A stretch of 64,000 nt of DNA from Paragordius varius (Eukaryota > Animalia > Nematomorpha): assembly GCA_964247055.1 (NCBI GenBank), contig OZ176051.1:10540001-10604000 (forward strand). The letters are read 5' to 3'. The translations under genes were made by a program, and so were the position numbers. This document shows, one piece after another, positions 3,684 to 32,540 of this stretch; within the stretch, counting starts at the first letter, position 1; each line of letters begins with the position of its first letter. Under the pieces are notes generated by a model. It did not search any database, had not been told where the DNA came from, and saw nothing but the letters and a program-made list of their open reading frames with translations.

Positions 3684-4914
3684 CACTGTGTGCAAAAAAG
3701 TGGGTCATTTTGATTTAACGAAAAAATTTTTTTCATGAGATAGCTTATGACCAGCGTATTCATTTGCCGCAAAAATTTATATTTGTTGACAACTTAGTTT
3801 TTGAAATATTGAGAGAAAATCGAAATCGGGCAAAAAGTGAAAATTAAGGATAATTCAAAAAATAATGATAAAATTTGAAATATTATCGTTTATTATCATT
3901 TTAAGGGATATTTTCATTATATAAATAGCCTAAAATCACATAGTTAAGGTTTCTATATATTTTAGATCAAAAGATGGCGTTCTTCTTTTATCACACAAAG
4001 ACAAAAAAATTAATGAAACTATATTAAAATAATTTTTTTTAATTATTTACTACCTAAACTTTCTATTAAAATCTTAACATTCATATTTTGTTCAGTAAAA
4101 TACACTCCCAAGTCAAAATAAAACCAAAAATTTTGTTTTTTTATTTTTGCATTTTTTTGTCATCTGATTTATGAGTATATAAAAAATACTGTTTTATTTT
4201 GGATTCTTACATGATTAGGCATTATTAAGTATATAATTGATGCAAATATGATTTAAAAGTAGTGGAATATCAACCAACAATCCTTACAATTTCCTGTAAC
4301 AAGTCTGTTTTATGACAATTGTATTGGTTGTACGGATTGTTGGTTAATATTCCACTAATTTTCAATCTTATATTGCATAAATTATATACTTAATAATTCC
4401 CACTCATTTAAGAATCCAAAATAAAACAGTATACATTTTTTATACACTCATAAACCAGATGACAAAAAATGCAAAAATAAAAAACAATATTTTTGGTTTT
4501 AATTTGATATACAAGTTTATTTTCCTGAATAAAATATAAATGTTAATTTTAATAGTGAGTTTAGGTAGTAAATAATAAAAAAAATTATTTTAATATAGTT
4601 CCATTAACTTTTTTTGTCTTTTAAGTATGATAAAAGAAAAACGCCATCTTTTGACCTGAAATTTTATAGAAACCCTAACTATATGATTTTAGGCTATTTA
4701 TATATTGAAAATATCTCCTAAAATGATAATAAACGATAATATTTCAGATTTTATCATTATTTTTTGAATTATCCTAATTATCCTTAATTTTCACTTTTTG
4801 CCCGATTTCGATTTTCTCTTAATATTTCAAAAACTAAGTTGTCAACAAATAAAAATTTTTGCGGCAAATGAATACGCTGGTCATACGCTATCTCATGAAA
4901 AATTGCACACAGTG
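3684..4914. mobile_element. Foldback / Tc1-mariner-like non-autonomous element with ~600-bp inverted arms
   Basis: Starts cactgtgtgcaa (3684) and ends ttgcacacagtg (4914) followed by TA. The arms are reverse complements all the way to a ~40-bp spacer at ~4288-4328. No coding capacity. Confidence 0.9.
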
Positions 4915-8700: not shown

Positions 8701-10530
8701 ATTTTCCAAAACAATTTTTATCATTTTTTCCCAAAGTTTTAGACAATATAAAATTAATAGGTGTGCTAAAGGCGAAAAGTTTACGCAGCGAGACACTTGG
8801 TGATGCTTCCCTCTATGTAAAGCGCCATATAAAAATGTCGTAATTTTGAAGAAAATTTTCGGAATACTATGAGTGAGACCATAATGATTGGATAAAGGTT
8901 TTAGCTTTTTGAAAGAAAAACTTTATTTAAAATAAGATAATGGTTAAAGCTTCACATTATAAAAAATACGCCACCATATAATAACGGGGTTTTAAGGCGA
9001 TTCCTACATTATGAGATATAGATAAAATTTAGCGTTCATCAAAAAATGTTTGATGACTGCTGGATTGTGATTCGTCTGTAGTCATCGCTAGCTCCTCACT
9101 TATTCGACAGTTCTGACATTCAGGATTCAATTCAGTTCCTTCATTATACAATACTGAATACAATCTTGTTTAAGTTTGCCCAAAGCATTGTAGAAAAGTG
9201 CTAAAAATATTTAATTTTACTCATGAAAAAAATACTTAATTACAGACAAAAAATATTTTTGAAATACTTGGTGTAACCTGTTATAATTATAAATTTATTC
9301 ATAGTATCCGAAATAGTTCGAATTTCATTAAATATGATTGCCGCCCAATTATATTAATATTTTTTTAATAATATTCAAACTAATTTGAATCAATATTTAA
9401 TTTATTATAGTAGTACCGTTCAAACATAAAATCAATTTAATTATTAATAATATGAATTAATCCCTTATTTACAAACCTTAAATTTTTTTTATCTTTTAGT
9501 AAATTAAATTAATATATGTAAGGGTACATGACTTTCTCGTATAATCGTTATTTTTTTAATTAATTATAGAAAACAAACATTCCGGTTATTGCATCTACTG
9601 CATGTAATATAATTGCCAATCAAACAGAATTTTATTCTTAACACTTCATTATCTTTTCATTTTTTTGTTACATCAGACTTTTTTAGCGCCATTTTTTTTA
9701 TATCGCCACCAGGCAAATAACCTCAAGCAGATTTCAAGCTACATTTTACCACCAAAACTTTATTTATTTTGATTTTAATATACGTTCCATTCAATCGTGT
9801 TTTGGACCTCTAATTAAATCTCTAAGTCACCAAAAATATAAATTTTAGCTAATACATAGAACAATATTTGAAAATTATATATGTCAAAAAAATTCAAAAC
9901 TTAGAAATTGAGCTCTGCAATGTTAAACCACCCCAAAAGGTAAAATTAAAAAAGTGAAAAGGTAATGAGGTAATTAACACTTCCATTTTGATGGGTTTAG
10001 TTACCCAGGACTTTTAAGTTGATATTTAAAAAAAACTAAAACGGTGTCAATTTAAATGTATGCATTTATCATAATAATTATGATAAGCGAAAATTTGCAA
10101 ATTTAAATTATTTTATAGACATTTTTATTTTAGGAAATTTTGCAAAATCGTGTTATTGATAACGATAAATTTAAATTTTTTATTTTTATCACATCCACAT
10201 TGATGTAAAGAGAAAAAGTTGTTTATTTTGCATGTAATATTTAGCTAATGAACGCATCTTATAAATTCAGCTCAAAGTTTACCCATAAAAATAATATGAG
10301 GTGTTTTGGAATCTTTTTTATATTTCGGTGCTTCAATGTTATATTAGAAAAAACTTGGTTTGGATTGCTCAATATTTTTATTATTTGATTTAGGACAGGC
10401 TTGAGGACAGAAATAAATATACATTGGCTTAAAATATTATTAATTTAGGCGTAAAAATATGAATTTTCTAAATATTTCAATTCACATAATTGTATCAGAT
10501 ATAATATGAATGACATGTGCAATCATAACT

Positions 10531-10949
10531 ATGCCAAGTGCGTCAGGTGGGAAAAAAGCAAAATCTACAAGTGACAATAAAAAATCAGAAAAATCCAATT
10601 GTAATAAAATTAAAGTAATTTACATTATATTTTTAGGTAAGGCACATATTATGCGAAAAAGAATCAAAATGTAAAGAAGCTTTGGCCAAATTGGAACAAG
10701 GTGGAAAATTTAATGAAATAGCAACTAATTACAGTGAGGATAAGGCTCGACACGGAGTAAGTTTTATTTGGTTTAAATAAAAATTTTTAGGGAGATTTGG
10801 GTTGGATGGATAGAACATCCCTTGTTAAGGAGTTCGCTGATGCTGCATTTGCTTTGCCCATAAGCACAATCGCATCTCCCAAGTATACAAACCCGCCTAT
10901 TAAAACCAAATTTGGATATCACATAATTATGGTTGAAGATAAAAAATAA
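10531..10949 (+). CDS. PIN4: Peptidyl-prolyl cis-trans isomerase NIMA-interacting 4 (parvulin-14), 120 aa; join(10531..10614,10637..10756,10791..10949)
   Basis: Spliced translation [28 protein letters not shown]|[40 protein letters not shown]|[52 protein letters not shown], which has the diagnostic Par14 motifs. Two phase-0 GT-AG introns of 22 and 34 nt. Confidence 0.97.
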
Positions 10950-13589
10950 AAGAATCGAATATAATATAATTTTTACATATTTATATAAATCAAGCGAAAA
11001 AATCTAATATTCATTATCATAATCATTATTTGTATAGCGATTCGCCATTAAATGGCGGTGCACCCATTTTTTACAATCTTTTCTTGATCTGGCTAATTTT
11101 AGATTTAAAGTAAGCGATTCGAGATCTCTGTTGATAATATACTTGTATAATAAAACCTAAAATCAGCCATGTTTTTAAAATTAATAGCAACAAACTCCTA
11201 AACACGCTATATTATATATGAAATGGATATTTTATACTAATAATTTAACTCTCAATGTTGGAATTTTCTCTTGTTTTATTTGATGTCGTTAAATGGTAAA
11301 GCCTATAATCTATTATTTATATTGGCAAAATTGAGAGAATTACGCATTATATTAGATGAAATTAATTAAAAATTAAGCTGAAATTATATGAATTCTATAA
11401 TGCACTAATGGCAGTCAGTTTGATCTGTAAAATCATTACTTGTACACAAGGGCATGTGCTACTTAAAAAATTCGCCTCAGAATACCACTAATTATGATTG
11501 AATGTGAATTGCGTGGTACGAAAACTCCGAATTCGGAGTCTATCCTTTATGAGATATTCTATAACCTGTGCCACATAATACCAACTTAACCTAAAAAAAA
11601 TTGTTCAAGATCTTAGCTTCGAAGCACAAAAGATTTTGTCCAGTTCAATTATAAATTCAAGTAACTTGTATCATTGCCGAATTTTATTTGATATTTCTTT
11701 ACATTCTTTTTATGACGGTTAACTAACATATATCTCTAATTTTAACGAAAAAACAATATGAAATAATTTAAAAAAATCTGGTTCGGAAAGAGCCTTTTTA
11801 AACTTTAAAAATAGCATAATATAGAAACATCAAAAGATAAACTTAGTAAAAAAAATTATATATATTATTTTTTTGATCATTGAAAAATTCTTTTAAAAAT
11901 ACCCAAAATGACATGAAAATTTTGTGGATTTTTTATCATTTTATGTAATTTTGGTTACACAATAAGAAATTGCTTTTATTTGGTTTAGATTGGCGATTTT
12001 TTAACGGGCTATTGTTGGAAAAGTAATAATTGACCATTTATAACATTCCGCGCTTACTCTTATAATTTTATTAACAAATTATTTTTAAATTACAGATTAT
12101 CTATTTTTTAATCAATTTTACTAAGCAAGAGTCCAAAAAAGATATGTTAGTAAAATATGGAATGAAAAAAATGTATGTTTATTGCGATGGATTTAAATAA
12201 AAATATTTTTTATTAAATACCACAAGATACCATATTTTATTGGTTATATGGCAAAATTTTCGTAATTAAATGAAAAAATTTCTAATCTGCTTACATCACA
12301 GTTTTTTGCGAGATTAAAGATATATATTGTTATAAAGTTTTGTTATATTTTGAGGTTTTTTTGCGTTCTTACCTGTTTTAATCTCAACCTACCCAAAAAG
12401 CCGCCATCACCCAATAAAAATTATTCATATTAAATTTGGGGAATTAGTTTGAACGTTATAGAACGGTTGAAATCTGGCCGAAAGTGGAAAACCAGAGAAA
12501 TTCTTAAGAAAATGGTTTAAACCGGGTACCCAAACCGGTTTTTACTATTTAACACCGGTTGCTATACCACATTTTTCAGATAACTTAAACTTTTATTTTT
12601 TTAAAAATATAATCTAGTACAAACATATCCCTACAGGTAGACCTGTCATATTAAGTCCTTTTCTTTTTATTATTCAATTGGATTCTTTATTAATCCGACC
12701 TTTAACACTATCATTACCACAGAGCTAATATTACTAGCGGTCACATCTTCATTCATTTAGTATCAACTACTACAAAAGGGGGTTCTATCTTTTACACTTT
12801 TTTTGTATTAAATTTCCTTGAATGAGTGTAGCACTAATTCAATCTTATGTGTTTATTTATATCATTAATTTCAGTATATAGAGATTATGATTACTAATTC
12901 ATTTTATCTGGTTTCACCTTCATCTTGGCCTTAATTTGCTGAGCCGTAGATATCTCACGAGAAAATAATTTCACAGACCTAATGTTTTCAAAAATAAAAA
13001 CGTGTATAAAATTTAGTTTTATATTATTTATATCAATAAAAAATCTAATATTTCGCTTTTAACTCTATTTATTTGATTTTAGGAGTATACTTTGCTTTAC
13101 CACAAATAGAATATACCTATTCTCTATTTAGTGTGTATGATATTTGTTTCGGTAGAGTGTTTTTTACTACCACCGGATTCCACGACACTCATATATAATT
13201 GGGTCCATAATTCTACTTGTATCTTTACCCTCATTTTTAATTTCGGGTGATTACTATTTCTATTACTTTTGAGTCATCTGCTCTTGATACTTACATTTTG
13301 TCGACGTAGTATGACTGTTTTTATTTTTAATCTTCTACTGATAGGGTGGTTAATTAGTAGTTTTAATTCTCTACGGCTATTATAGTAAAAAAAGTACATT
13401 AATTAAAAAACAAAAATATCAATACTCATACGTCTTATTATTATTTTTGTTTCTACTTTTTTAAGAGCTACTATTGCTATAGCCCAACTCACCACAAATT
13501 AGAATAATATTTATATTAAATACAATGTCATATAAATTATATATATAAATAATAATAATTTAACTTAAGGTTATAAACAATTAACATAT

Positions 13590-15299: not shown

Positions 15300-15571
15300 T
15301 CTGCTATAATTATACAGACAAAGCCTAAAAATATAAAGAAAAATATTTTTTCCTAAAAACAGCCATTTTTTTAATCTTGAATTCGTAATATCATTAATGG
15401 CAAAGTAGGAAATGGAAATATATATTGAATCAATTTCATTTTTTTATATTTTACATATAAATAAGGTACATGGAAAAATTTAGATTTATAAAGAGTATGG
15501 GGATGTCTTTTAAAAAAAATATTTGTACTTATATTTTTACATTTTGTCCGTATAATTTCGGGGGTTTACTG
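15300..15571. mobile_element. Tc1/mariner-like MITE family, copy C
   Basis: Right TIR ...ttgtccgtataatttcgggggtttactg|ta ends 8 bp from the beta-galactosidase stop codon. The left TIR is degenerate. Confidence 0.75.
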
Positions 15572-15578
15572 TATTTTT

Positions 15579-18500
15579 TTAAGCATACCTTTCACCAAAA
15601 TCCAAACTATTATTTATGGGTGCTTCATTATCTGATTGAGGTTTTTGGGAGTCAGCTTTTGTCTCAGTTTCCTGTATCGATTCTATATTTTCTGTAATGC
15701 TTGTTATTGTATGGGGCGGAGGTACAACTCTAAGATAAACCACTTCAATTTCATCATGAAGAGAAAATGACGATCCCCGCGGTTTCCCAATAAACGATAA
15801 CTTTTGTCCGGAATTCATACAAGGGGGACTAGGTTCCAATTCAAGCATAATAATATGATTCATCTGTGGATGCGGTTTGAGATACAAGCCCGGCACATAA
15901 AGGGTGGATTGTGGACCCACCGGGTTATAAAAACGCCCAAGATTGTAACCATTCAAAAACACATTGCCCTGTAATAAAAATTTTTTTTATATAACTTTAT
16001 GAAGAAAAAAAAAACGCTGAATATCTAATTTTTTGTATCCTTAAATTTTATTTACAGTAATGTATGTTTAGAATTGTCAAACATACGTTTTTAATTGATT
16101 TTGCCTTTTTTAATTGCTTACAATAAATAGGCTATTATTATTTCAAAGCTTAAAAATGCGCATGTTGAAAGTTGATATATCAAACATCGTAACAATTAAA
16201 AACAAAGTAAAATCAATTAAAAAATGTTTGACATAAACATACATGACTGTAATAAGTATTGAACAACAAACTGGTTTTATTATTCAAAACAATCGGAAGA
16301 AATAGATGTTACCTTATGCCAACCCCGAGTATCAAGGTATGTATCATTCGGTTCCGATCCATATTTGCTATCAATGACGAAATGGCCTCGAAATACTTTG
16401 GGGGGGCACATCGTTTCCTCATCCGATAAGGAAGAATAGATTCGAGCCTTTTGTCTACTGTCTTGTTGTTTCATATTTTTCTGCGATTCGAATTGGTGAG
16501 TTTCTTCTTTATTTATGTCTTGGTGTTTGAATAAACGATCCACATTGACAGGTAAGGAGAGCTGCATTTTAAAATTAAATGTCATAATATACATATACAT
16601 ACCATTTTTCAGTCAAACGCAACATTTTTTAATTAAAAAAAATGGTCATATGCATTGTAAGTACTATACCCAGTCATAGTATCGAGTCCCATTTATGAAA
16701 ACACCTTGAAGGATGCCTTTAGTATCATTGAGATAGGGTCCGTAACAGATGCGGCCTTCATTTTCAACCAGGATATCCAAAGTACTACCTCCAGGTAAAG
16801 GCCAATCCGAGCTCGTAAACGTTAAATTGTACATGTCAAGCGTCCGGTCTATTGTCCCCAATATTATCTATTATAAACATACACAAATAACAAGATTCGC
16901 TCTAGTTTCAATTAAGAGTTTTTACGAAAAAAGGGTTAAGTTCCTCTGTTTGGTCAATGGTTTTGCTAAATTCGATTTAAGATTTTTGTTAAAATGTATA
17001 GCAGCAAACCTTTAGGCTAAACATTTTCTCGATTGCTACTTTGCCATTAAAATTGTAAAAAAATTTAAATAATTTATATATAAAGCGATAAATTATATAT
17101 TATTATATAAAATCCCAGGATAGTAAAGTTTCTGAAAAAAACACATTAATTTTCCAATTTTATGCATCATATAAAACTATGTACACAGTAATATATACAT
17201 ATTTAGTATGCATTTTAATAATTGCTTATTTCACACTACAAGAGGGCAAATCACAGTGGTATATATAGAAAATTCTACAAAATGTTGAATAAACAATTAT
17301 TTCCTTTCTTTTTCCATACCCTATAAGGTTACGAATTTCTCCCCAATGTGAAACAGGCAACTAAAATGCATACAATACAATTTTTATCAAAAAAAATATT
17401 TAATTAGCGTTAACATATTTTTTATTGTTATAAAAGTAGTATAGTTTCGCCATTTAAAATAATATTAACAAAAAACGATTAGGGATTGTAAATGAATGTA
17501 CTTACATCATTTAAAAGGATTTGAGCTCTGTCGGCTATTCCGGGAACACTAATCACCAATTTAATGGAATCGTCACGATTCTTGGCCATTCGTTTAACTG
17601 GATGCTCAACTATAAATGCAAAAAAGGTACAGAAATAAGGGTAAATTTTTAAATTTTAGACGTATTTCAAATTACAATCAATAATATTATGAAAATATGA
17701 TTCGTTTTTTGTGCTATTTTAATAATTTTTGCAATAATGTTTAATCAAACGATTTTACCAAGATCAGGAACAATGTGGCGATAAAGAACATAACCCCAAC
17801 CATGACCTAATTGTTCAAAAGTCAAAGGATCCCTGGTGGTGACATTGTTGGGGGCTTGTACAGCATCAATGATTAGTTCAATGAGCGTGTCATTGGGATG
17901 GACTGTCACATCGCCATACCACACTTTCCCTTGTCTGTGGTGAGAGGGTCGCGGGCCTGACGGAACACTTTTATACTATGGAAGATTATACAACAGATGG
18001 GTTATTCCGTGATATATAAACGAAAAAAAAAACAAAATTAAACTAAATTGGAAATTCAGTAAATAGTTAATAAATGACAGATATGTGAAACCATTTGTAT
18101 GCAATAGTAATCGCAAACTACTTATTTGTGGCCAAAAATATTGACTTTAAGTAAGTTAGTAAGTAAGGAAAAAGAACCTTTGAAATAAGATCTCGAATCG
18201 CCCAAAATTTTGGGGTATAATCACCCCCTTCATTGAGAGGTGCATCGAAGTCGTAACTCGTGGTGCAAGGAAGATAGGTTAAACGCTTTTTCCCAATTCC
18301 AGATGTATCATTATTATGTCCATTAAATCCATAAATATAATCATCTCGATCAAATATTCCACGTTTGACCCTTGATTTCAAATCCAGTTCTAAAGGATAT
18401 ATATTATGTAACATTCAAACCTCAAATAATTCACCTTTGAAAAATTCAAATTCAACTTTGAACATAAATTCACCCTAAAACAATTGAAATTCACCCTTAA

Positions 18501-21500
18501 ACAATACAAATTCACCCTTAAATAATTCAAATTCTACCTCGAACAATCCAAATACACCCTTAAACAATACAAATTTACCCTTATATTTAAACTCACCCTT
18601 GAATATTTGAATACCCTAAACTAAATTATGTGTTTATAAACCAAAAATTACTTATATTTTTTTATCCAATGTCATTCGTTTAAAATTAATATAAAACAGA
18701 AAAAAATAAATAATACATACATTAATGAAGAATAATATCATTAGCCCCGAAACAAATAATTTTTTTTAGGGTGAATCGAAATGCTAAAGGGTGAATTCGA
18801 AATGTTCAAGGGTAATTTTGGATTTATTTTAGGTGAATTGGAATCATTCAAGGGTAAATTTAAAGTCTTATATATTAATATATTGTTATATATCAATTAA
18901 TTAAAAACAAATTGATTTTGATTATATTAAAATAACTTTTAATCTAGTCTTTAGTTAAAAAAACGTAATTTAAACAAAAATTAATTAACAAATCTAATAT
19001 ACCTTCATCTATCCAATACATATTAGCACCATTGTAAAAGCCAGGAGTTGTTCCGCCCTCGACGACATAAAGGTTGACACATGTCGTGTTTGATGTTTGC
19101 AGAATTTGCTCCAATGTTTTAATCACGTCCTTTGAATCAACTTTGCTGTGAGGAAAACCTTTTTTTAATATATAAACTGTGTTATATAAATACAAAACAG
19201 GGAGACAAAAAACGTAAAAAATAGGAGTTAGAGAAAATTGGTATTAATTACTACATATATATTTTAAAATTAAAATGTAATAAAAAAATATCATGGTTTT
19301 ACAGTAAAATATGAATTTATACGGACAAAACGTAAACATATAAAGACAAATATTAGTTATAGACATATTCTTTTTTAAACCTTAGTTTTTCTTATATGAA
19401 ATATTAATTAAACGCCTGAAAAATATAAAATTGATTGTGTTACCAATAGTCATCTCTATTTCATGCTTTCACATTCAGAACAATAAGTTATAATTATAAA
19501 ATTTAAAAAAGTATGGTTGGTTGTCTTTTAGACAAAAATATTTGTCGTTATATTTTTACTTTTTGATCCGTATAAATTTATTTTTCAGCATATTTTAGAA
19601 GGTTTGCTCTGCGTACTGAAAAAAAAAGAATATTGGATATGCCTTTTTCAAATATCAAGGTTGATTGTCTTTTAAATAAAAAAAATTATTTGTGATTTTT
19701 TTATTTTTATGTTTTGTTTGTCCGTACCTTTTTTTAAATTTCCATAAAAATAAAGTGTTTATGTCATACCAACATGATCTATCCAACCCACATAAAATTC
19801 AGAATTAATTAGAGGTCCACGCGGTTCAACTGCTCTCTGCGTCGCAAAAGATTCATTCACATTTCCGCCTAAATATATAAATACAATATATAATTTTAAG
19901 AATGACAAATTAACTTTTTGCATTGGGCTATTTTTGAAAAAAAATGCCTAAATTAAGGATTTGAAACTGCTCAAAAATGAATAAATATAGTAATTCAAAC
20001 AAAAACTCTAAAATAAACAATTTCTATTTAAAACAGAAAATGGGGTTTTCGGGCCGCATTGTGTTTACTCACTCAAGGTTACACACAAAGATATATTAAT
20101 TTTGATTCTGAAACGAAAGGGGAAAAATAACATGTAAAATTGTTAAATCGATAAGGTAATAATTAATATCGTCATTATTAATTATGAGAAATAATATATT
20201 AATGGATAATAAAAAAAATTTTCGTATTAAATCACGCAAAATTAAAGATTATCTAAAACAAGGATGTCCGACATGCGGTCCTCCTAGACTTTATGTGCGG
20301 CCCGCGAAAAACTTGGAAATTCATAAATTATTAAAATATGCTCACAAAATCTCAATAAAATTAATATTTCGTAAACGATTTTCCTAAATAAATCTATCCG
20401 TTTGGGGAGAATTAGAAAAAATTACGATAATAAGTTTGCATGTTACAGTCTTTTTTTATAAATGCCCATATATATTTTGAATGCGAACCTGCGAAGCCAT
20501 TAGTGTCAAACACCCTTGCTCTAAAAGAAATAATAAATGTAAAAGCAAAGTTTTAAAGAACATTAACAAATAAATATTATAAACAGGGAACAGCAAATAG
20601 ATATATTTGTCTATCTATATCGCAAAAACTATTTAATTTATATTTGTTAATTTAGACTGTTCATTAAAGTTAAATTACCCGTTCCAAAATCAATTGTAGC
20701 ATAGACCCCTGGAATCTTTCCGCACTTTAACATGGAGGGATTGTCGCCATCTGTTGTGAAAAAAACTGTATCATTGCCTAAAAACATACGCGCCGTTTGA
20801 AATAAACCCGAAAGATAAACTGTGTCACAGGCAGGATAACTTCCATACTCATTTTCAATCTATAATAAGATATGCTGTAAAAATTACAAAAATTATACGG
20901 GGAGGTAAAAATATAAAAATTTAATTTTCCAAAGGACAAATCCATACATACTTTTTTAAGCCTTAATTTTTTTCATATATAAGTTATAAAACTATAATAG
21001 CAAAATATTTGTAATTAATTATTTTACCAATCTGCAAATTACATACTTTGGAGTTTATAACAATGAGTTAATATATTTTAAAATATTCAAAATTTAAAAA
21101 GTTTGGTTATCTTTTAGCTAAAAATATTTGTCTATATTTTTACGATTTGTCCGTATAATTTCAATTTTTACTGTGTAATATTTACCTAATAGGTAAAAAT
21201 TAGTCTGAAGATGGAAAGTGTGAGTTAATATAAAAAATGTTTCAAAACACACTTATAAAAAGTTTTTATATTTTTTTATTCATGACTTTAATTTTAAAAA
21301 TATGTGAATTTTATAAAATGCAAAAGACGATAAATGCCACATTGCGTGGGAAAGAAAGCATGCATTGCTTGCTTTTTATCTGGTTTGATCTTGTCAAACA
21401 ACATAATTTTAAAAAAAGTCGGTCTACTAATTAATTATCAAGTTAAAGCTTAGAAAAACCTGAAGCATAATGATTGGTCCACCATTCTTATGCAAAAACT

Positions 21501-22099
21501 TAGTGATTCGAGGAAGCAAATAAGACCACCAGTCTATAACGTGTCTAAAATACGCAGGATTGCTTGTGCGCATAGCATTAAGTCTGACTAAATGTGAATC
21601 ATTATTAAGCCAAAAAGGGAGTCCACCCTGAACATTACAAATAAATTAAAACTAAATCCCATTCAGCATCAATGTATGGACCAAGTCTGAGTATGACATC
21701 AAGATTCGTACTATTGGCAAGCGATAAAAATTTGAATAAATCGCGATCGCCAGAAAAATCAAAAACTCCCTTGGCTGTTTCATGAAAGTTCCAAGCTACA
21801 TATCTAAAATAAAATTTCGCTATAAATCGTAATTTCAAAATGAGTTAAAACACATACGTTTGAACAGCATCCAAACCCAAATATTTAAGCTTTTGAAGGC
21901 GATCTTGCCAATACTCAGCAGGAACTCTAAAGTAGTGCATGGTTCCCGATATGTATCGATAAGGCTGGCCATTTTTCAAAAACTGATTGTTTTCATAATC
22001 GATTTCAAATGTTGGTGATCCGGCATACGATGCTAACTATAATATAATTTAGAAAAAAACCTTATTTATCCATAAAAGGTAGCAAAATAAATAAATCAT
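15579..22099 (-). CDS. GLB1: Beta-galactosidase, glycoside hydrolase family 35 (GLB1/GLB1L family), 780 aa, 13 exons
   Basis: complement(join(15579..15968,16313..16561,16670..16867,17506..17609,17759..17975,18178..18389,19003..19158,19770..19868,20679..20859,21460..21627,21653..21803,21858..22036,22061..22099)). All introns are GT-AG, phases are consistent, and the total is 2343 nt. Motifs: [45 protein letters not shown] (acid/base Glu), NSEFYVGW (nucleophile Glu), [25 protein letters not shown]-terminal hydrophobic signal-like peptide. GLB1 versus GLB1L orthology is not resolved. Confidence 0.95.
18420..18870. repeat. Inverted minisatellite arrays (~21-bp unit aaattcacccttaaacaat), foldback-type element in a beta-galactosidase intron
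   Basis: About nine forward copies at 18425-18620 and about five reverse-complement copies (aagggtgaatt) at 18767-18865, separated by an AT-rich spacer. Confidence 0.8.
19302..19588. mobile_element. Tc1/mariner-like MITE family, copy D
   Basis: ta|cagtaaaatatgaatttatacggacaaaacgtaaacatataaagacaaatatt ... aatatttgtcgttatatttttacttttgatccgtataaattta. Confidence 0.85.
20259..20518. mobile_element. hAT-Charlie-type MITE
   Basis: TIRs caaggatgtccga / tcaaacacccttg (10/13 complementary), 8-bp TSD atctaaaa / ctctaaaa (close to the NTCTAGAN-type target), and gcggcccgcg subterminal motif. Confidence 0.8.
20875..21173. mobile_element. Tc1/mariner-like MITE family, copy E
   Basis: ctgtaaaaattacaaaaattatacgg ... 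ttgtccgtataatttcaatttttactg. Lies ~14 nt from a splice acceptor in beta-galactosidase intron 4. Confidence 0.85.
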
Positions 22100-22173
22100 T
22101 GTTTGTATTTTGTTACAAACTCATTCATGCACTAATTTGAATTTTCAATTTAACCGTAAAATTAGCAAATAAA

Positions 22174-26774: not shown

Positions 26775-27657
26775 TATTTTATAAAAAAGGTACAACTTCT
26801 AGGATAGCCCTTCATATTTCAAATGAAATTATTACATAATTAGTAAATTAAGGTCGAAAATGATGGATTGATTTATAATTATTTGGTAACATATTTCTTA
26901 CCACAAATGTTTTGAGGGAGATTTCTTAATAGGGAAAAGCAATTTAACTCGTTCAAAATTTTCAATTGTCATTGGGTAAATTTTAAATAATAAAACGTAA
27001 GTTCTGAAGTTTAAATGGTAAATTATTCGATTTTTAGGGTACTAATCATAAAATATTAATTCTACTCTTAAAGCAAAAGTTATCTCTCGAGAGGAGGCGT
27101 CATTTTGAAGGAAAATAGGATAGTCCGAAAAATGCGAAATAAAAAAATTCGATGTGAGAGAGTTGAGATCGAAATATAAAAGCTATTTTTTGTAAATTAG
27201 GCAATGGCTTAAAAATATAGTTGAAACACTTTAATGGATTTGTTGAGATTAATTAACATCTTTGGCCCTTATTTAGTAGGGCAAGTGATAGAAATCATTT
27301 GAAATTAAAAATATGATTGTATCCTTATACATATAATATTTATTTTTCATTTTTACGTTTTGTCTATAATGATTTATTTTTTATTGTATTTTTAATTTAT
27401 TACTATTCTTTCCAAAGTTTAGTTTTTTCGATAAAAATAAAAATAATTGTCAGCTATAAATTGTAAAATATAAAGCCTGATAAATTAGGAATGTCATGAT
27501 GCTAAAAATTAAAAATTAATAATGTGTCAACTGAACCTTAAAATAATTATTTTATCTGTATTAATTTTTAAATAATCTGAAAATACCTTCCTTTTTTATT
27601 TTTTAAAATTCTAGTTAAAATATTTATTATACAATTACATACATTGAAATTGGTATT

Positions 27658-29508
27658 ATGCTAATAACTCACCAAAAAAATCAATTAATATCTATATGGA
27701 TTACCTTAATTTTCATGATTCTAATTTTGATAATATTCACAGATAAGTATATATCAGTCAAATATATGGTCTCATGGCAAACGTATCGATATATCTTACA
27801 ACTTTGCAATAATGTATCAACTCCAAAAATATTTTTACCCCTAAATCATAAACCACAAAATGGTATTGCTGTTAAAAACATGCCCAATAAAAATTATTTT
27901 AGGCAGAATAAAAAGGTAATAACAGCCCTGTCTCATGCTTTGCAGAGCAATAATGGTTTTGTCGAATATGATATTAATCTTCCCTACTGTAAAATTCCTA
28001 AATTAATTCAACCAGCTACAAAACTTAATCGTTCAAGACGATATTCGGAATGTGCTGGAAAAACGAATCTTAAACCATTTACCAATGTAAAAAACGGTAT
28101 TTTGAGAATAAACAAAGACCGATTGAAATACTACTTTTCCGAAACTCCAAATATTTCACCGTCAAATATAATTTGCACATATGGGAAAATTGAAAGAGAT
28201 ATGACAACTCAACAGCCTGATAAAATGATTAGGTTTGTTTTAAGAGGTTCAATGACAATAAACTCACATATTAAAATCCTGGATGAATTTATACTAGTCC
28301 GTTGTTTTAAGGACGAAAATGCTCTTAAAGCAGTTATTCCTTTTTACAGCCATGTGCATTTTAATGATATCTACACAAAGAGCTCCGTATACACTGAAGA
28401 AATACCAGTTATTGCCGAAGGTAATCTAAGTTTTGTTGAAATATATGGTTTTTTTATCATTAAAATAAATTATACAGACAAAACTAAAAAACTAAGAGAC
28501 AAAAATTTTGTTAATAAGATAACCATTTTTAACCCCCATATATATATTATTTGATAAATCTAAAATACATAAATGTGTTACCAATTTACATCTCTATTTC
28601 ATACTTGGCAATTTAAAAAGACGAGATATGTTTAAAAAGTACAGTAGTCTTTTGAAAAAAAATATTTGTGTTTAGATTGGTTCTGCTCATTGAAAAGGTT
28701 GTTCCAAAAAGAAAGTCTCGTGTATTTGTTATCTCCATAAAGTTCTAATTATAGGTTAAGTTTGTATCTAATTTGTGTTAGGCTAGATCCACTTTGTTTG
28801 CTATGTTTTATGGGGTCTGCCCGCTTTACGGTGTTCACTTTGTAAAATGGTTTTTAGTATGTGGGACGGATCTCTACGATATATATGACCCCTCCATCTT
28901 AGCCTACCCATTTGGATGATATCGGCCATTGATTTTATTTAAGAGGACAGTGTGGAGGTCATGGTTCGTTGTGTAATTTGCAAATATAAAATTGTAATCA
29001 AAAATCTACGTTTTGATTGAATTAATTAGCGGAGTGTGTTTTTCAGTGCCCATGTTTCCGATCCGTATTTTAACACCAATTGAATAGCTTTGGTGTATAA
29101 TTGAGCTATTGTGAGGTTAATACATCTGTTTGCAGAATATTTCCACGAGTGAAGAATATTCCAGCTCTGAATATGCGATGCTTGACAGTTTCTTCAAGCC
29201 CTCCACCTGCTGACATCTTATCTCCCAGTTAAACCAATTTTTCAACTATCTCAATCCCAAACTTGGTGATGATAACGTAATTTAGGACTCGGAGATTCTT
29301 TCAAGCATTTTTGGCATATAAAATTTAGGTTGTTTAGTGGAAGGTTTGAAAGATTAGTAATATTTTTTATGTAACCAGAATTTGCATTGTGGGCAATGGA
29401 TCGAAGTGTTTTTAACCTCTTTGCCGCATTTTCGGCATGAGTTTTTAATTTTTTTGATACCATCCATCATTAATTTTGTAATTTAATAAATTACAAACTA
29501 TAGTTTTA

Positions 29509-29546
<38 letters not shown>

Positions 29547-32540
29547 CACCTAATAAACTTGTCTAATAGATTCTGTGCCTCCCAAAATCCAGCTACCAAA
29601 CATACTTATGTTAGGTGTTGATTCTCTCTCCAGATCTCATTACATATCACACATGAAAGCAATGCAAACATTTTTCTCCAGGAATAGCTCATTTTCCCGA
29701 ACACATTCTACCTTTTTATTTGATGGTTACGTTAAAATTGGTGATAATACCTTTCCCAATTTATATCCCTTGTTGACAGGGACCCCAATATCATTAGAAT
29801 CAATGGAACAGCATATTGCTTTTAGGGACAATTTTTTTGATCCACAACACTTTATATGGAAGAAATATGAATCACAATTAAAATACCTGACAATGTACAT
29901 TGAGGATAGCTCTGAATTGGGTACATTCAGTTATCATAAACATGGATTTTACAAAACACCAACACATTATTATTTTAGACCATTGGCCATTACACTCCGC
30001 AAATTAAGAAAATCAAGTAATCTAGTTTACATATTTCAGTGCCATAACGTTTCTTTATTAATAAACTACCGATAAGATGGGTCACATTAGTTTATAGGGA
30101 TATAATATGATAAATATGTGATATAATTAAATTATATCACATTTCTCTAAAAATATTTTTTCTTAAACTTAATATATTACTTCATTTCCAGAAACCATAT
30201 AAAATGTTTGCTCAAATGCTCTAGATTCCACGCCTTGCAATTCACATTTGTCTGAAGTCAAGCTCATGTTTAAATATACCTTAACGAGAATAAGAGACGC
30301 TCTAGGAAAAAATCCGTATTTTGCATTTGTTTTTACTAGCCGTTTAACCCATAATTCCCCCTATGAATTCGATCAAATAGAAAGTTTAATCCATGTTATG
30401 CTGTCGCGTATGCAGAAAAGGGGCGATCTCAAAAACACCATTGTAATTTTGTTTGGAGATCATGGTATAAGACACGGGGTAAATAGAAACAGTTTTACGG
30501 GTAGGTGATTTGAATATATATTACAGTAAATAAAATTATTCTTCCAATATTAATATTTTATTTAATTTAACAGGTGTTTTTATTACAGCATTTTACCCTA
30601 AATAACTTTCATTACAAACATAAGTTATTTAATCATAAAAATTAACAAATGTTTTTTATCGCCTTAATCCGTTTTTTAAGTCCCAAATTTTTAAAACTTT
30701 AAGACTACCTTAACATTTAAATAGTAACTATTGTCACATTAGTAATCTTTTTCTAGATATTAACAAAATAATTGGTTTGCTTTTTACATAATTGACATAA
30801 TGTCCGTATATCATTTTTAGATTATGGAAAATTATAAAAATAATGTCAATTTTTAATGATGGCATAAATTACACTCCTGAATCTTATTATCTAGTTCGTA
30901 TAAAATTTGGAAATCGACGGTTTTAGTTTTGGTTATAGAAATTATAAGACAAAACGTAAAAAATAGATAAATATTTCAAAGATGTTTTATTTTTTAAATT
31001 TTTAAGATTCTCAAAAACTCCTTTTTGAAATAAAACCATTTTTCAGTTTATTATGTTTTGACTTTAAACTTTTTATTTATACTGTGGCTTCACTCTAATT
31101 TAAAATATCATTATCCTAGGTCGTAAAAGGCTGGGGAATTGTCCTTAACATATGTTTGAATTATTTTAAAAGTTTTGCATAAGGTTGAGTTTAATACAAC
31201 TGCTTTCATTCAAGGCCATCATAATCAACTTTCTTTTTATCGGTTTAACTAATGGTTGTCCGACAGCGGCAAAAATTTAATAAATTACCAAATAATTTTT
31301 TCACATTTTGAAATATATGGTCACAAAATTTTGAAGGATAAATTTTCAAAAACGTCTTCCAGATCGTCAAACAACAAGCAAAAAATGGTCAAAATAATAG
31401 TAAATCTGTCATTTTTTAGAGCTTTATCATGAAAATAAAAAATATATAATGCCCATATTTTCAAATGCGGTCCGCCCGATTTTTTGAGTTGAAAATATGG
31501 CCTGCAAGCCATTTGACTTGAAACCCTATGTAAGAGACGGATTAAACATCAAATGTAAAGTTTCATAAACTTTGTAATAAATTATGGACAATTCTTAGTT
31601 TTATATTTTTATAAATTCCTATGGTTAATATAGATAGAATTAGGAGATTAAATACTCTCTAGGTATAAAATTACATCTTGGACCGTGTTTTTTAATAATT
31701 AAAGCTTGTTATTTTTGTTATTGTACAATAAATTTTGATAAATGCAATAAAGGTATGATGGCGGATAGATTACCCTTGTTACACATCTCTATTCCGAAAA
31801 CAGTTTTGCAGTTCCTTTCTCTCCAAGATGAAAACGTTGAAAAAAATTTGCTTTGGAACACCAAAAATCTCGTAACTCCGCTAAATTTACATGCCACTCT
31901 CCAAGATTTAATGGAACGTATCGTCTATCATATTAGCCAACTTTCTAACCTCAACAAAGCAAACAGTGGCAAAAATGACAATTCTAAACGGCATCAGAGT
32001 TTGTTCAATTTCATTCCTAATAATGTCAAGTGTGAAGATGTGGGAATCAGATCTGCATTTTGTCCATGTAATATTTTACCTAGCCGGATAAATATAAATC
32101 ATACGATATATCAGGTTAGTGCTCAACGAGTAATCAAAGCTTTAAATTTTATGTTAGAATCAACGAATGAAACAAAATATAAATGCCATGAATTAAGGCT
32201 AAAAACCATATCATCCGCATATATATTGGCCAAAACTGCTAAAATACTACCAGATATTTCAAACGATACTAAAATTGAAGATTTAATTACTGATAGCAAA
32301 ATAATCAGTGGTGATAAAATGGTGATTACACACCAGAAATCAATACTTTCTGATTTATGGCTTAGATTAATCATAAAAACATTTCCAGGAAAAGCGCTTT
32401 TTGAGGCAACTTTAGGCTGGGATGAAACGACACACGCCTTTACCAAATTGGACAAAGAAATTGAACGCATCAACACTTACGGACACCAATCTGATTGTAT
32501 CAAACATGATATATTGCGAAAATATTGTTTTTGTAAATAA
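27658..32540 (+). CDS. DUF229-domain protein (alkaline phosphatase/sulfatase-like superfamily), N-terminal membrane anchor, 757 aa; join(27658..28420,29570..30016,30225..30500,31753..32540)
   Basis: Three phase-1 GT-AG introns give 2274 nt in frame. Motifs: PNILMLGVDSLSR, GYVKIGDNTFPNLYPLLTG, IEDS...GF...PTHYYFRP, LTHN, NTIVILFGDHG, G|MMADRLP, NLVTPLNLHATLQD, CEDVGIRSAFCPC, IERINTYGHQSDCI...LRKYCFC. Hydrophobic segment at residues ~10-27. Confidence 0.93.
28700..29480 (-). mobile_element. RTE-type LINE 3' fragment in DUF229 intron 1
   Basis: Minus-strand broken translation ...NLNFICQKCL... LKYGSETWAL (~29050-29070) ... IIQMGRLRWRGHIYRR (~28880-28920) ... KAGRP. Confidence 0.9.
29512..29544. 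repeat. (AT)n microsatellite
   Basis: Directly visible. It ends ~25 nt upstream of the DUF229 exon 2 acceptor. Confidence 0.95.
31249..31530. mobile_element. hAT-Charlie-type MITE, degenerate
   Basis: Left end ctaatggttgtccgacagcggc and right end ggcctgcaagccatttgacttgaaaccctatg resemble the termini of the 20259-20518 element. Confidence 0.5.

Follow-up and report, generated by a model that had tools for sequence, protein, structure and literature searches.

Among 51 animal genomes surveyed in Mol Biol Evol in September 2026, introns shorter than 30 bp were detected only in the Myxobolidae, where medians are 22 to 27 bp, and in Dicyema, and further lineages with introns of this size were predicted (PMC13644364). 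The argument made there is of the same kind as the one used here: the exon junctions are conserved, U2 is canonical, and A residues precede the AG. Among parasitic flatworms, Gyrodactylus salaris and Echinococcus have a micro-intron mode of about 32 to 36 nt that is concentrated at intron positions 1 and 2 (PMC4040987), and among ciliates, the introns of Paramecium are about 25 nt and those of Stentor 15 to 16 nt long (PMC5014332, PMC9505925). The list of short-intron lineages in the earlier note on this DNA (ciliates, chlorarachniophyte nucleomorphs, microsporidia, and dicyemid mesozoans) leaves out the myxobolid myxozoans (PMC13644364). For Nematomorpha, no report of tiny introns was found in the literature searched, the main hairworm genome paper (Cunha et al. 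2023) lying outside it, and introns go unmentioned in the Nematomorpha genome papers searched.

Here, a gene of the Par14/PIN4 parvulin family was analyzed in a window of 64,000 nt, the whole stretch of DNA under study, to which all positions without a contig name refer. The plus-strand interval from 10531 to 10949 very probably represents an intact, single-copy, three-exon Par14/PIN4 gene from which introns of 22 and 34 nt would be removed by ordinary U2-type GT-AG splicing. As in the myxobolids and Dicyema (PMC13644364; PMC6736024), canonical GT-AG introns of less than 30 nt are found at conserved positions between conserved flanking exons, with A residues a few bases before the AG as the putative branch site and a conventional U2 and spliceosome, and the published medians of 22 to 27 bp overlap the 21 to 28 nt observed here. 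In those lineages, however, tiny introns are the norm (the Dicyema mean is 38 bp) and the genomes are compact, whereas here they form a minority beside introns of 200 to 1500 nt. Splice-site logos of the myxobolids and Dicyema are reduced to about GTa and AG, whereas most verified introns here keep a T-run. The layout is like that of the parasitic flatworms (PMC4040987), with a micro-intron mode beside introns of up to many kb and a bias toward the 5' end of genes, but the flatworm short mode of about 32 to 36 nt compares with about 23 to 25 nt here, verified down to 21 nt, and the phylum of the present host is probably different (Ecdysozoa, hairworm-like). The present case thus seems to combine myxobolid or dicyemid intron length with a flatworm-like, two-class, 5'-biased layout in an apparently different phylum. 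Ciliate introns are similar in length, AT-richness, and canonical GT-AG ends; ciliates, however, are unicellular and essentially all of their introns are tiny, whereas in the present host, an animal, introns fall into two classes.

Par14/PIN4 gene and its second intron

Three open pieces on the plus strand at 10510-10949 correspond to a Par14/PIN4 parvulin gene, whose locus is present in a single copy in the 110.6-Mb assembly. Its parts are listed in Table 1 together with the tiny introns of other genes. All homology searches were run exon by exon, and no joined spliced protein was used as a query. Exon 2 corresponded to residues 5-44 of human Par14 chain 1eq3 (E 9e-12) and exon 3 to residues 45-96 of the same chain (E 1e-18), and Pfam assigned Rotamase_3 to exon 2 and both Rotamase_3 and Rotamase to exon 3 (E about 2e-8). 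Human Par14 was the best solved relative of both exons, which places the gene among the Par14/PIN4 parvulins. The two exons are intact, show 71-79% identity to the nearest Par14-type proteins, and together form a rotamase domain colinear over 92 residues with human Par14/PIN4 (1eq3, 3ui4, and 1fjd). As in human Par14, this domain is preceded by a basic, unstructured-looking N-terminal extension without a WW domain.

Exons 2 and 3 abut between Par14 residues 44 and 45 with neither gap nor overlap. Because these flanking exons are exactly colinear with human Par14, the stretch between them is an intron, proven by homology as firmly as protein colinearity allows; the 34-nt second intron named in the earlier note is reproduced at exactly this place. 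The TAA stop codon shares bases with an AATAAA hexamer (10945-10950), a sign that the PIN4 3' untranslated region may be very short. The Rfam search of the window gave no matches.

Table 1. Coordinates of the Par14/PIN4 gene, of tiny introns in other genes, and of mitochondrial repeats
Feature	Location	Strand	Description
PIN4/Par14 exon 1	10531..10614	+	Basic K/S/G-rich N-terminal extension
PIN4/Par14 intron 1	10615..10636	+	22 nt, GT-AG, phase 0, 14% G+C, T5 run then AG
PIN4/Par14 exon 2	10637..10756	+	40 aa; first half of PPIC-type rotamase domain; Rotamase_3
PIN4/Par14 intron 2	10757..10790	+	34 nt, GT-AG, phase 0
PIN4/Par14 exon 3	10791..10949	+	Second rotamase half (10791-10946, 52 aa); TAA stop 10947-10949
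Beta-galactosidase (GLB1-like) intron	21628-21652	-	25 nt, GT-AG; exons 21653-21802 and 21460-21627 correspond to 7kdv 67-116 and 117-168
CCT-zeta introns	G000:C4 3727789-3727811, 3727702-3727724	-	23 and 23 nt
BiP-type HSP70 intron	G000:C4 12482291-12482313	+	23 nt
Further BiP introns	Same gene	+	28 and 69 nt; read from sequence
Second CCT intron	G000:C1 9887362-9887387	+	26 nt; colinear with paralogue at residues 25/26
PLK1 orthologue intron	G000:C5 4615598-4615618	-	21 nt; exons correspond to PLK1 4j52 residues 25-60 and 61-99
PLK1 orthologue intron	G000:C5 4615457-4615480	-	24 nt; Pkinase profile positions 83/84
CHK1-like kinase intron	G000:C6 3032618-3032641	+	24 nt; profile coordinates near-contiguous
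Cases read by eye only			TCP1-alpha, 24 nt; second CCT, 25 nt; a CDK, 25 nt
Mitochondrial repeats	L040 (G000:C44:5980-10320) positions 53-314, 770-1472, 4064-4257		

Boundaries of the 22-nt intron and its upstream exon

In the frame of exon 2, a TAG codon at 10634-10636 stands directly before the motif Val-Arg-His-Ile-Leu-Cys-Glu-Lys. The acceptor AG at 10635-10636 is forced, because this in-frame TAG blocks any other upstream acceptor that would preserve Val-Arg-His. Two other ways of entering exon 2 were rejected: an acceptor at 10641 leads to an immediate stop, and spliced-leader (SL) trans-splicing onto 10637 would leave no in-frame ATG, none being present in exon 2. On the donor side, the upstream ATG-initiated open reading frame (ORF) contains six GT dinucleotides, and both reading and a mechanical scan found that all except the one at 10615 (10539, 10542, 10548, 10571, and 10601) are out of phase. 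Left unspliced, the frame from the ATG at 10510 crosses the interruption and stops at 10672-10674 as an ORF of 54 aa. Splicing out the 22 nt restores the frame, with an exact match on the downstream side and a match limited to the Met-Pro start and the Ile-Lys end on the upstream side. Two claims of the earlier note were thereby borne out, namely, that this GT-AG stretch is needed for a conserved PIN4, with exact coordinates and lengths and a premature stop if unspliced, and that its donor is the sole phase-0 site joining the upstream exon to VRHILCEK.

The ends of the interruption, GT at 10615-10616 and AG at 10635-10636, are of the U2 type. A U12-type intron was rejected, the start being GTAATT and not (G/A)TATCCTT, with no TCCTTAAC-like branch box. 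The AG is preceded by the T5 run and, at distances of 8, 10, and 13 nt, by A residues; the sole yUnAy match is TTTAC, the A of which is 8 nt from the 5' end of the intron. The region 7-12 nt before the AG holds no T(T/A)TAAT-like motif; the intron has only TTATAT and, farther 5', TTTAC. The branch point would probably be one of the A residues 8 to 13 nt before the AG. At 22 nt the intron falls within the verified class of 21 to 28 nt, toward its low end, and it is under 30 nt long, occupies a position conserved in animals, and is flanked by conserved exons. At the level of sequence comparison, it is confirmed as a real ultra-short intron that would be spliced by the ordinary mechanism.

The frame of exon 1 is open from the earlier ATG at 10510; the Met-Pro at 10531 is more likely to be the actual start. 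The exon encodes 28 low-complexity residues, 64% of them K/S/G/A, that begin with Met-Pro-Ser and end with Ile-Lys. It carries no Pfam domain and no WW-encoding ORF was found upstream, so that a basic extension takes the place of the Pin1 WW domain. Orthologues were gathered by an exon 3 search of 1.84 billion representative proteins. The complete Par14 orthologues start with Met-Pro-(Pro/Ser)-Lys followed by a K/G/S-rich stretch, and six of them (P0029, P0007, P0050, P0009, P0049, and P0030) have [A/T/S/Q][V/I/L]-Lys right before Val-Arg-His. BLASTP of exon 1 against the orthologue N-termini gave nothing significant, and a MAFFT multiple alignment placed the exon wrongly; the extension is 28 aa long here, whereas the complete orthologue P0029 has 44 aa ahead of Val-Arg-His, with no alignable similarity. 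The frequency of such an arrangement by chance was estimated from 172 TTTAG sites located in the 36 kb outside the satellite, each searched for an ATG-ORF of at least 28 codons that ends in phase 0 at a GT 18-40 nt upstream. Twelve sites (about 7%) passed; of these, the PIN4 site alone was K/S/G/A-rich, and just one ended in [V/I/L]-Lys. A Par14-like upstream ORF was present at the PIN4 site only, out of the 172. The position, composition, and Met-Pro and Ile-Lys ends of exon 1 are indirect but consistent evidence that it is the putative true Par14 N-terminus.

Both introns also coincide with points at which database models of Par14 break down. Mispredicted models diverge exactly before Val-Arg-His(-Ile-Leu) in P0008, P0023, P0026, P0028, P0037, and P0044 and exactly before Gly-Asp-Leu-Gly-Trp in P0001, P0006, P0017, and P0054. 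We infer that the divergence points reflect intron read-through in the PIN4 models of other animals; read in this way, they would put both PIN4 introns at ancestral positions. The same mispredicted models suggest that introns before Val-Arg-His and Gly-Asp-Leu-Gly are common to human PIN4. Most likely, both introns are ancestral ones that have shrunk to near the physical minimum.

Tiny introns in other genes

Homology-verified introns of 21 to 28 nt were found in six other conserved genes (Table 1), which supports the view of the earlier note that the spliceosome of this uncompacted genome can deal with introns of about 22 nt. With the 34-nt intron of PIN4 added, these make up the verified range. 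In CCT-zeta, the two introns flank a 64-nt mini-exon that consists of 21 full codons and the last base of a split codon; the three exons correspond to residues 2-45, 47-67, and 68-134 of human CCT6, and residue 46 is the split codon. The first listed BiP intron interrupts the motif Gly-Ile-Asp-Leu-Gly-Thr-Thr-Tyr-Ser / Cys / Val-Gly-Val, and residues 3-14 and 16-61 of the intron-free HSC70 paralogue from the same genome align on either side of it. Flags for stops inside hits were raised in two gene families. In CCT hits they arose from over-extension of the HMM into ordinary introns and were rejected as signs of tiny introns; in kinase hits the same flags exposed the in-frame introns of 21 and 24 nt.

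The verified tiny introns are all GT...AG, with a G+C content of 9-20%; both phase 0 and phase 2 are represented, and lengths may or may not be multiples of three. In most of them a T-run precedes the final AG, and TAAT or TAAA lies 7-12 nt before this AG. The PIN4 introns would belong to this genome-wide class, which is 21-28 nt long (occasionally about 34 nt), AT-rich, and usually closed by a T-run and AG.

The frequency of the class was surveyed in exon tables compiled for the families CCT and HSP70. Among 54 resolved junctions, 1 intron was shorter than 40 nt, 6 were of 67-165 nt, and 47 were of at least 200 nt, reaching 5.5 kb; most introns in the surveyed genes measured 200-1500 nt. When the introns adjacent to mini-exons, which the tables miss, are added, roughly one in eight introns in the CCT and HSP70 genes is tiny. 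In every case, the tiny introns are among the first few of their genes, the later introns of which are 200-1500 nt long. This 5' bias was seen in BiP, CCT-zeta, TCP1-alpha, PLK1, GLB1, and PIN4, and 5'-placed loci lie at G000:C4:3727702-3727811, C4:12482291-12482313, C5:4615457-4615618, C1:9887284-9887387, and C6:5287869-5287892. A homology-free ORF-bridging test on 109 kb of gene-rich loci and the window gave no excess of GT...AG over control dinucleotide pairs, and likewise its AT-island version, both being too noisy. Because this statistic did not separate GT...AG from the controls, the class was demonstrated through conserved proteins only.

Within the window, the GLB1-like gene of family GH35 (15500-22100, minus strand) is a multi-exon gene. 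In addition to its 25-nt intron, it contains one of 54 nt (21804-21857) and a candidate of 24 nt (22037-22060). Its downstream introns are hundreds of nucleotides long.

Alternative explanations

The acceptor at 10636 could be real and be served by another donor, either in a distant upstream exon or at a GC within the same ORF, where phase-0 GC sites at 10540 and 10558 would give introns of 97 and 79 nt. The ORF at 10531-10614 would then be partly or wholly coincidental, a reading favored by the lack of significant homology in exon 1, by the roughly 7% of TTTAG sites at which some ATG-ORF ends at a nearby in-phase GT, and by the predominance of ordinary long introns in the genome. Against it, no Par14-like N-terminus was present among the plus-strand ORFs within 700 nt upstream, the Met-Pro start, K/S/G composition, and Ile-Lys end were unique to the adjacent ORF, neither GC site has a donor-like context, and introns of 21-26 nt were verified in other genes. 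Another donor is thus unlikely, and splicing from the GT at 10615 is preferred.

That the 22 nt represent an assembly or sequencing artefact, in whole or through a length error of 1 nt, or a frame-breaking insertion in a young pseudogene, is very improbable. A length of 3n + 1 does behave as a frameshift, and long-read assemblies are prone to errors in AT-rich homopolymer runs. The segment, however, resembles the other verified tiny introns: it is bounded exactly by GT and AG, carries a T5 run before the AG, and contains 14% G+C. An artefact would need to look like an intron at a site where the presence of an intron is conserved. Its seven codons, if read as coding, would be hydrophobic where orthologues have a basic stretch before Val-Arg-His, and exons 2 and 3 have kept their frame and their similarity to Par14-type proteins. 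Handling of the interruption without a spliceosome, through programmed frameshifting or bypass by the ribosome or through ciliate-like removal of an internal eliminated sequence, hardly deserves credence: no observation specifically favors it, the boundaries are canonical GT-AG, the same architecture recurs in phases 0 and 2 with 3n and non-3n lengths, and both U1 and U2 are canonical in this host, a bilaterian animal.

Spliceosomal RNAs and probable splicing mechanism

The earlier note had proposed a survey of the spliceosome, and for its snRNA part, both U1 and U2 turned out to be canonical. The U1 snRNA (124.3 bits) has the canonical 5' end ACUUACCUG and the U2 snRNA (177.7 bits) the canonical branch-binding box GUGUAGUA. 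No sign of a separate splicing machine was seen among the U1, U2, and tiny-intron features examined. The most economical reading is that tiny introns are cut by conventional intron-definition splicing with the major spliceosome at near-minimal spacing, and the canonical U1/U2 machinery would presumably recognize the PIN4 introns as well.

The snRNA genes are clustered at G000:C3:257000-528000 and G000:C6:565000-634000, with more than 25 hits for U2 and more than 10 for U1. The range of the copies from full-scoring to sub-threshold suggests arrays with many decaying members.

Host genome and possible consequences for annotation

Contig C44 is a mitochondrial genome of 15,693 bp with a complete COX1. 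ARAGORN in metazoan-mitochondrial mode identified about 20 tRNA types on it, and in default mode none. Two kinds of repeat were found on the contig. Palindromes that are perfect and have zero spacer show arms of 131 and 97 nt, and units of about 72 bp, every one with a 52-nt hairpin, are repeated in tandem; ARAGORN calls the latter repeated Val/Asp tRNA-like genes. Palindromes and hairpins are a trait described for the mitogenomes of Nematomorpha (PMC6649704). Mitochondrial DNA of 15.7 kb that is of the bilaterian type with about 20 tRNA types rules out a myxozoan or dicyemid host. The G+C content of the non-satellite window, 25-32%, compares with a reported 26.93% in the hairworm Gordionus montsenyensis (10.1101/2023.06.26.546503), whereas the assembly size of 110.6 Mb agrees poorly with the 200-300 Mb of published hairworm assemblies (10.1101/2024.06.11.598342). 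The host is probably a hairworm.

There is about an even chance, in our judgment, that the bilaterian host, most likely a member of Nematomorpha, represents a third independent animal lineage with spliceosomal introns of less than 30 nt, having a floor at or below 21-22 nt and a discrete 5' class in an uncompacted genome with kb-sized introns and canonical U1 and U2. If this holds, the "rampant gene loss" and roughly 70% BUSCO of hairworms could partly reflect genes that are mis-annotated where tiny introns occur. Gene finders and aligners that by default accept no intron shorter than about 30-60 nt would frameshift or truncate genes such as PIN4, BiP, CCT subunits, and PLK1, and mis-annotation of this kind would lower completeness scores and raise apparent gene loss. 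A single spliceosome must define introns of 21-26 nt and of kb length inside single genes. With two intron sizes per gene, the host would therefore offer a natural system for the study, in animals, of what sets the minimal spacing between the two splice sites and the branch point.

Other features of the window

From 35148 to 64000, the window consists of a 482-bp satellite in about 60 copies of 98% identity, which runs off the window end and has a uniform 36.5% G+C and a positive GC skew. A DUF229 (sulfatase-like) gene lies on the plus strand at 27650-32540; it has three or more large exons with ordinary introns between them. On the same strand, an ORF at 1573-1899 with a weak integrase-core match (rve_3, E 0.005, below the Pfam cut-off) is probably retroelement debris.
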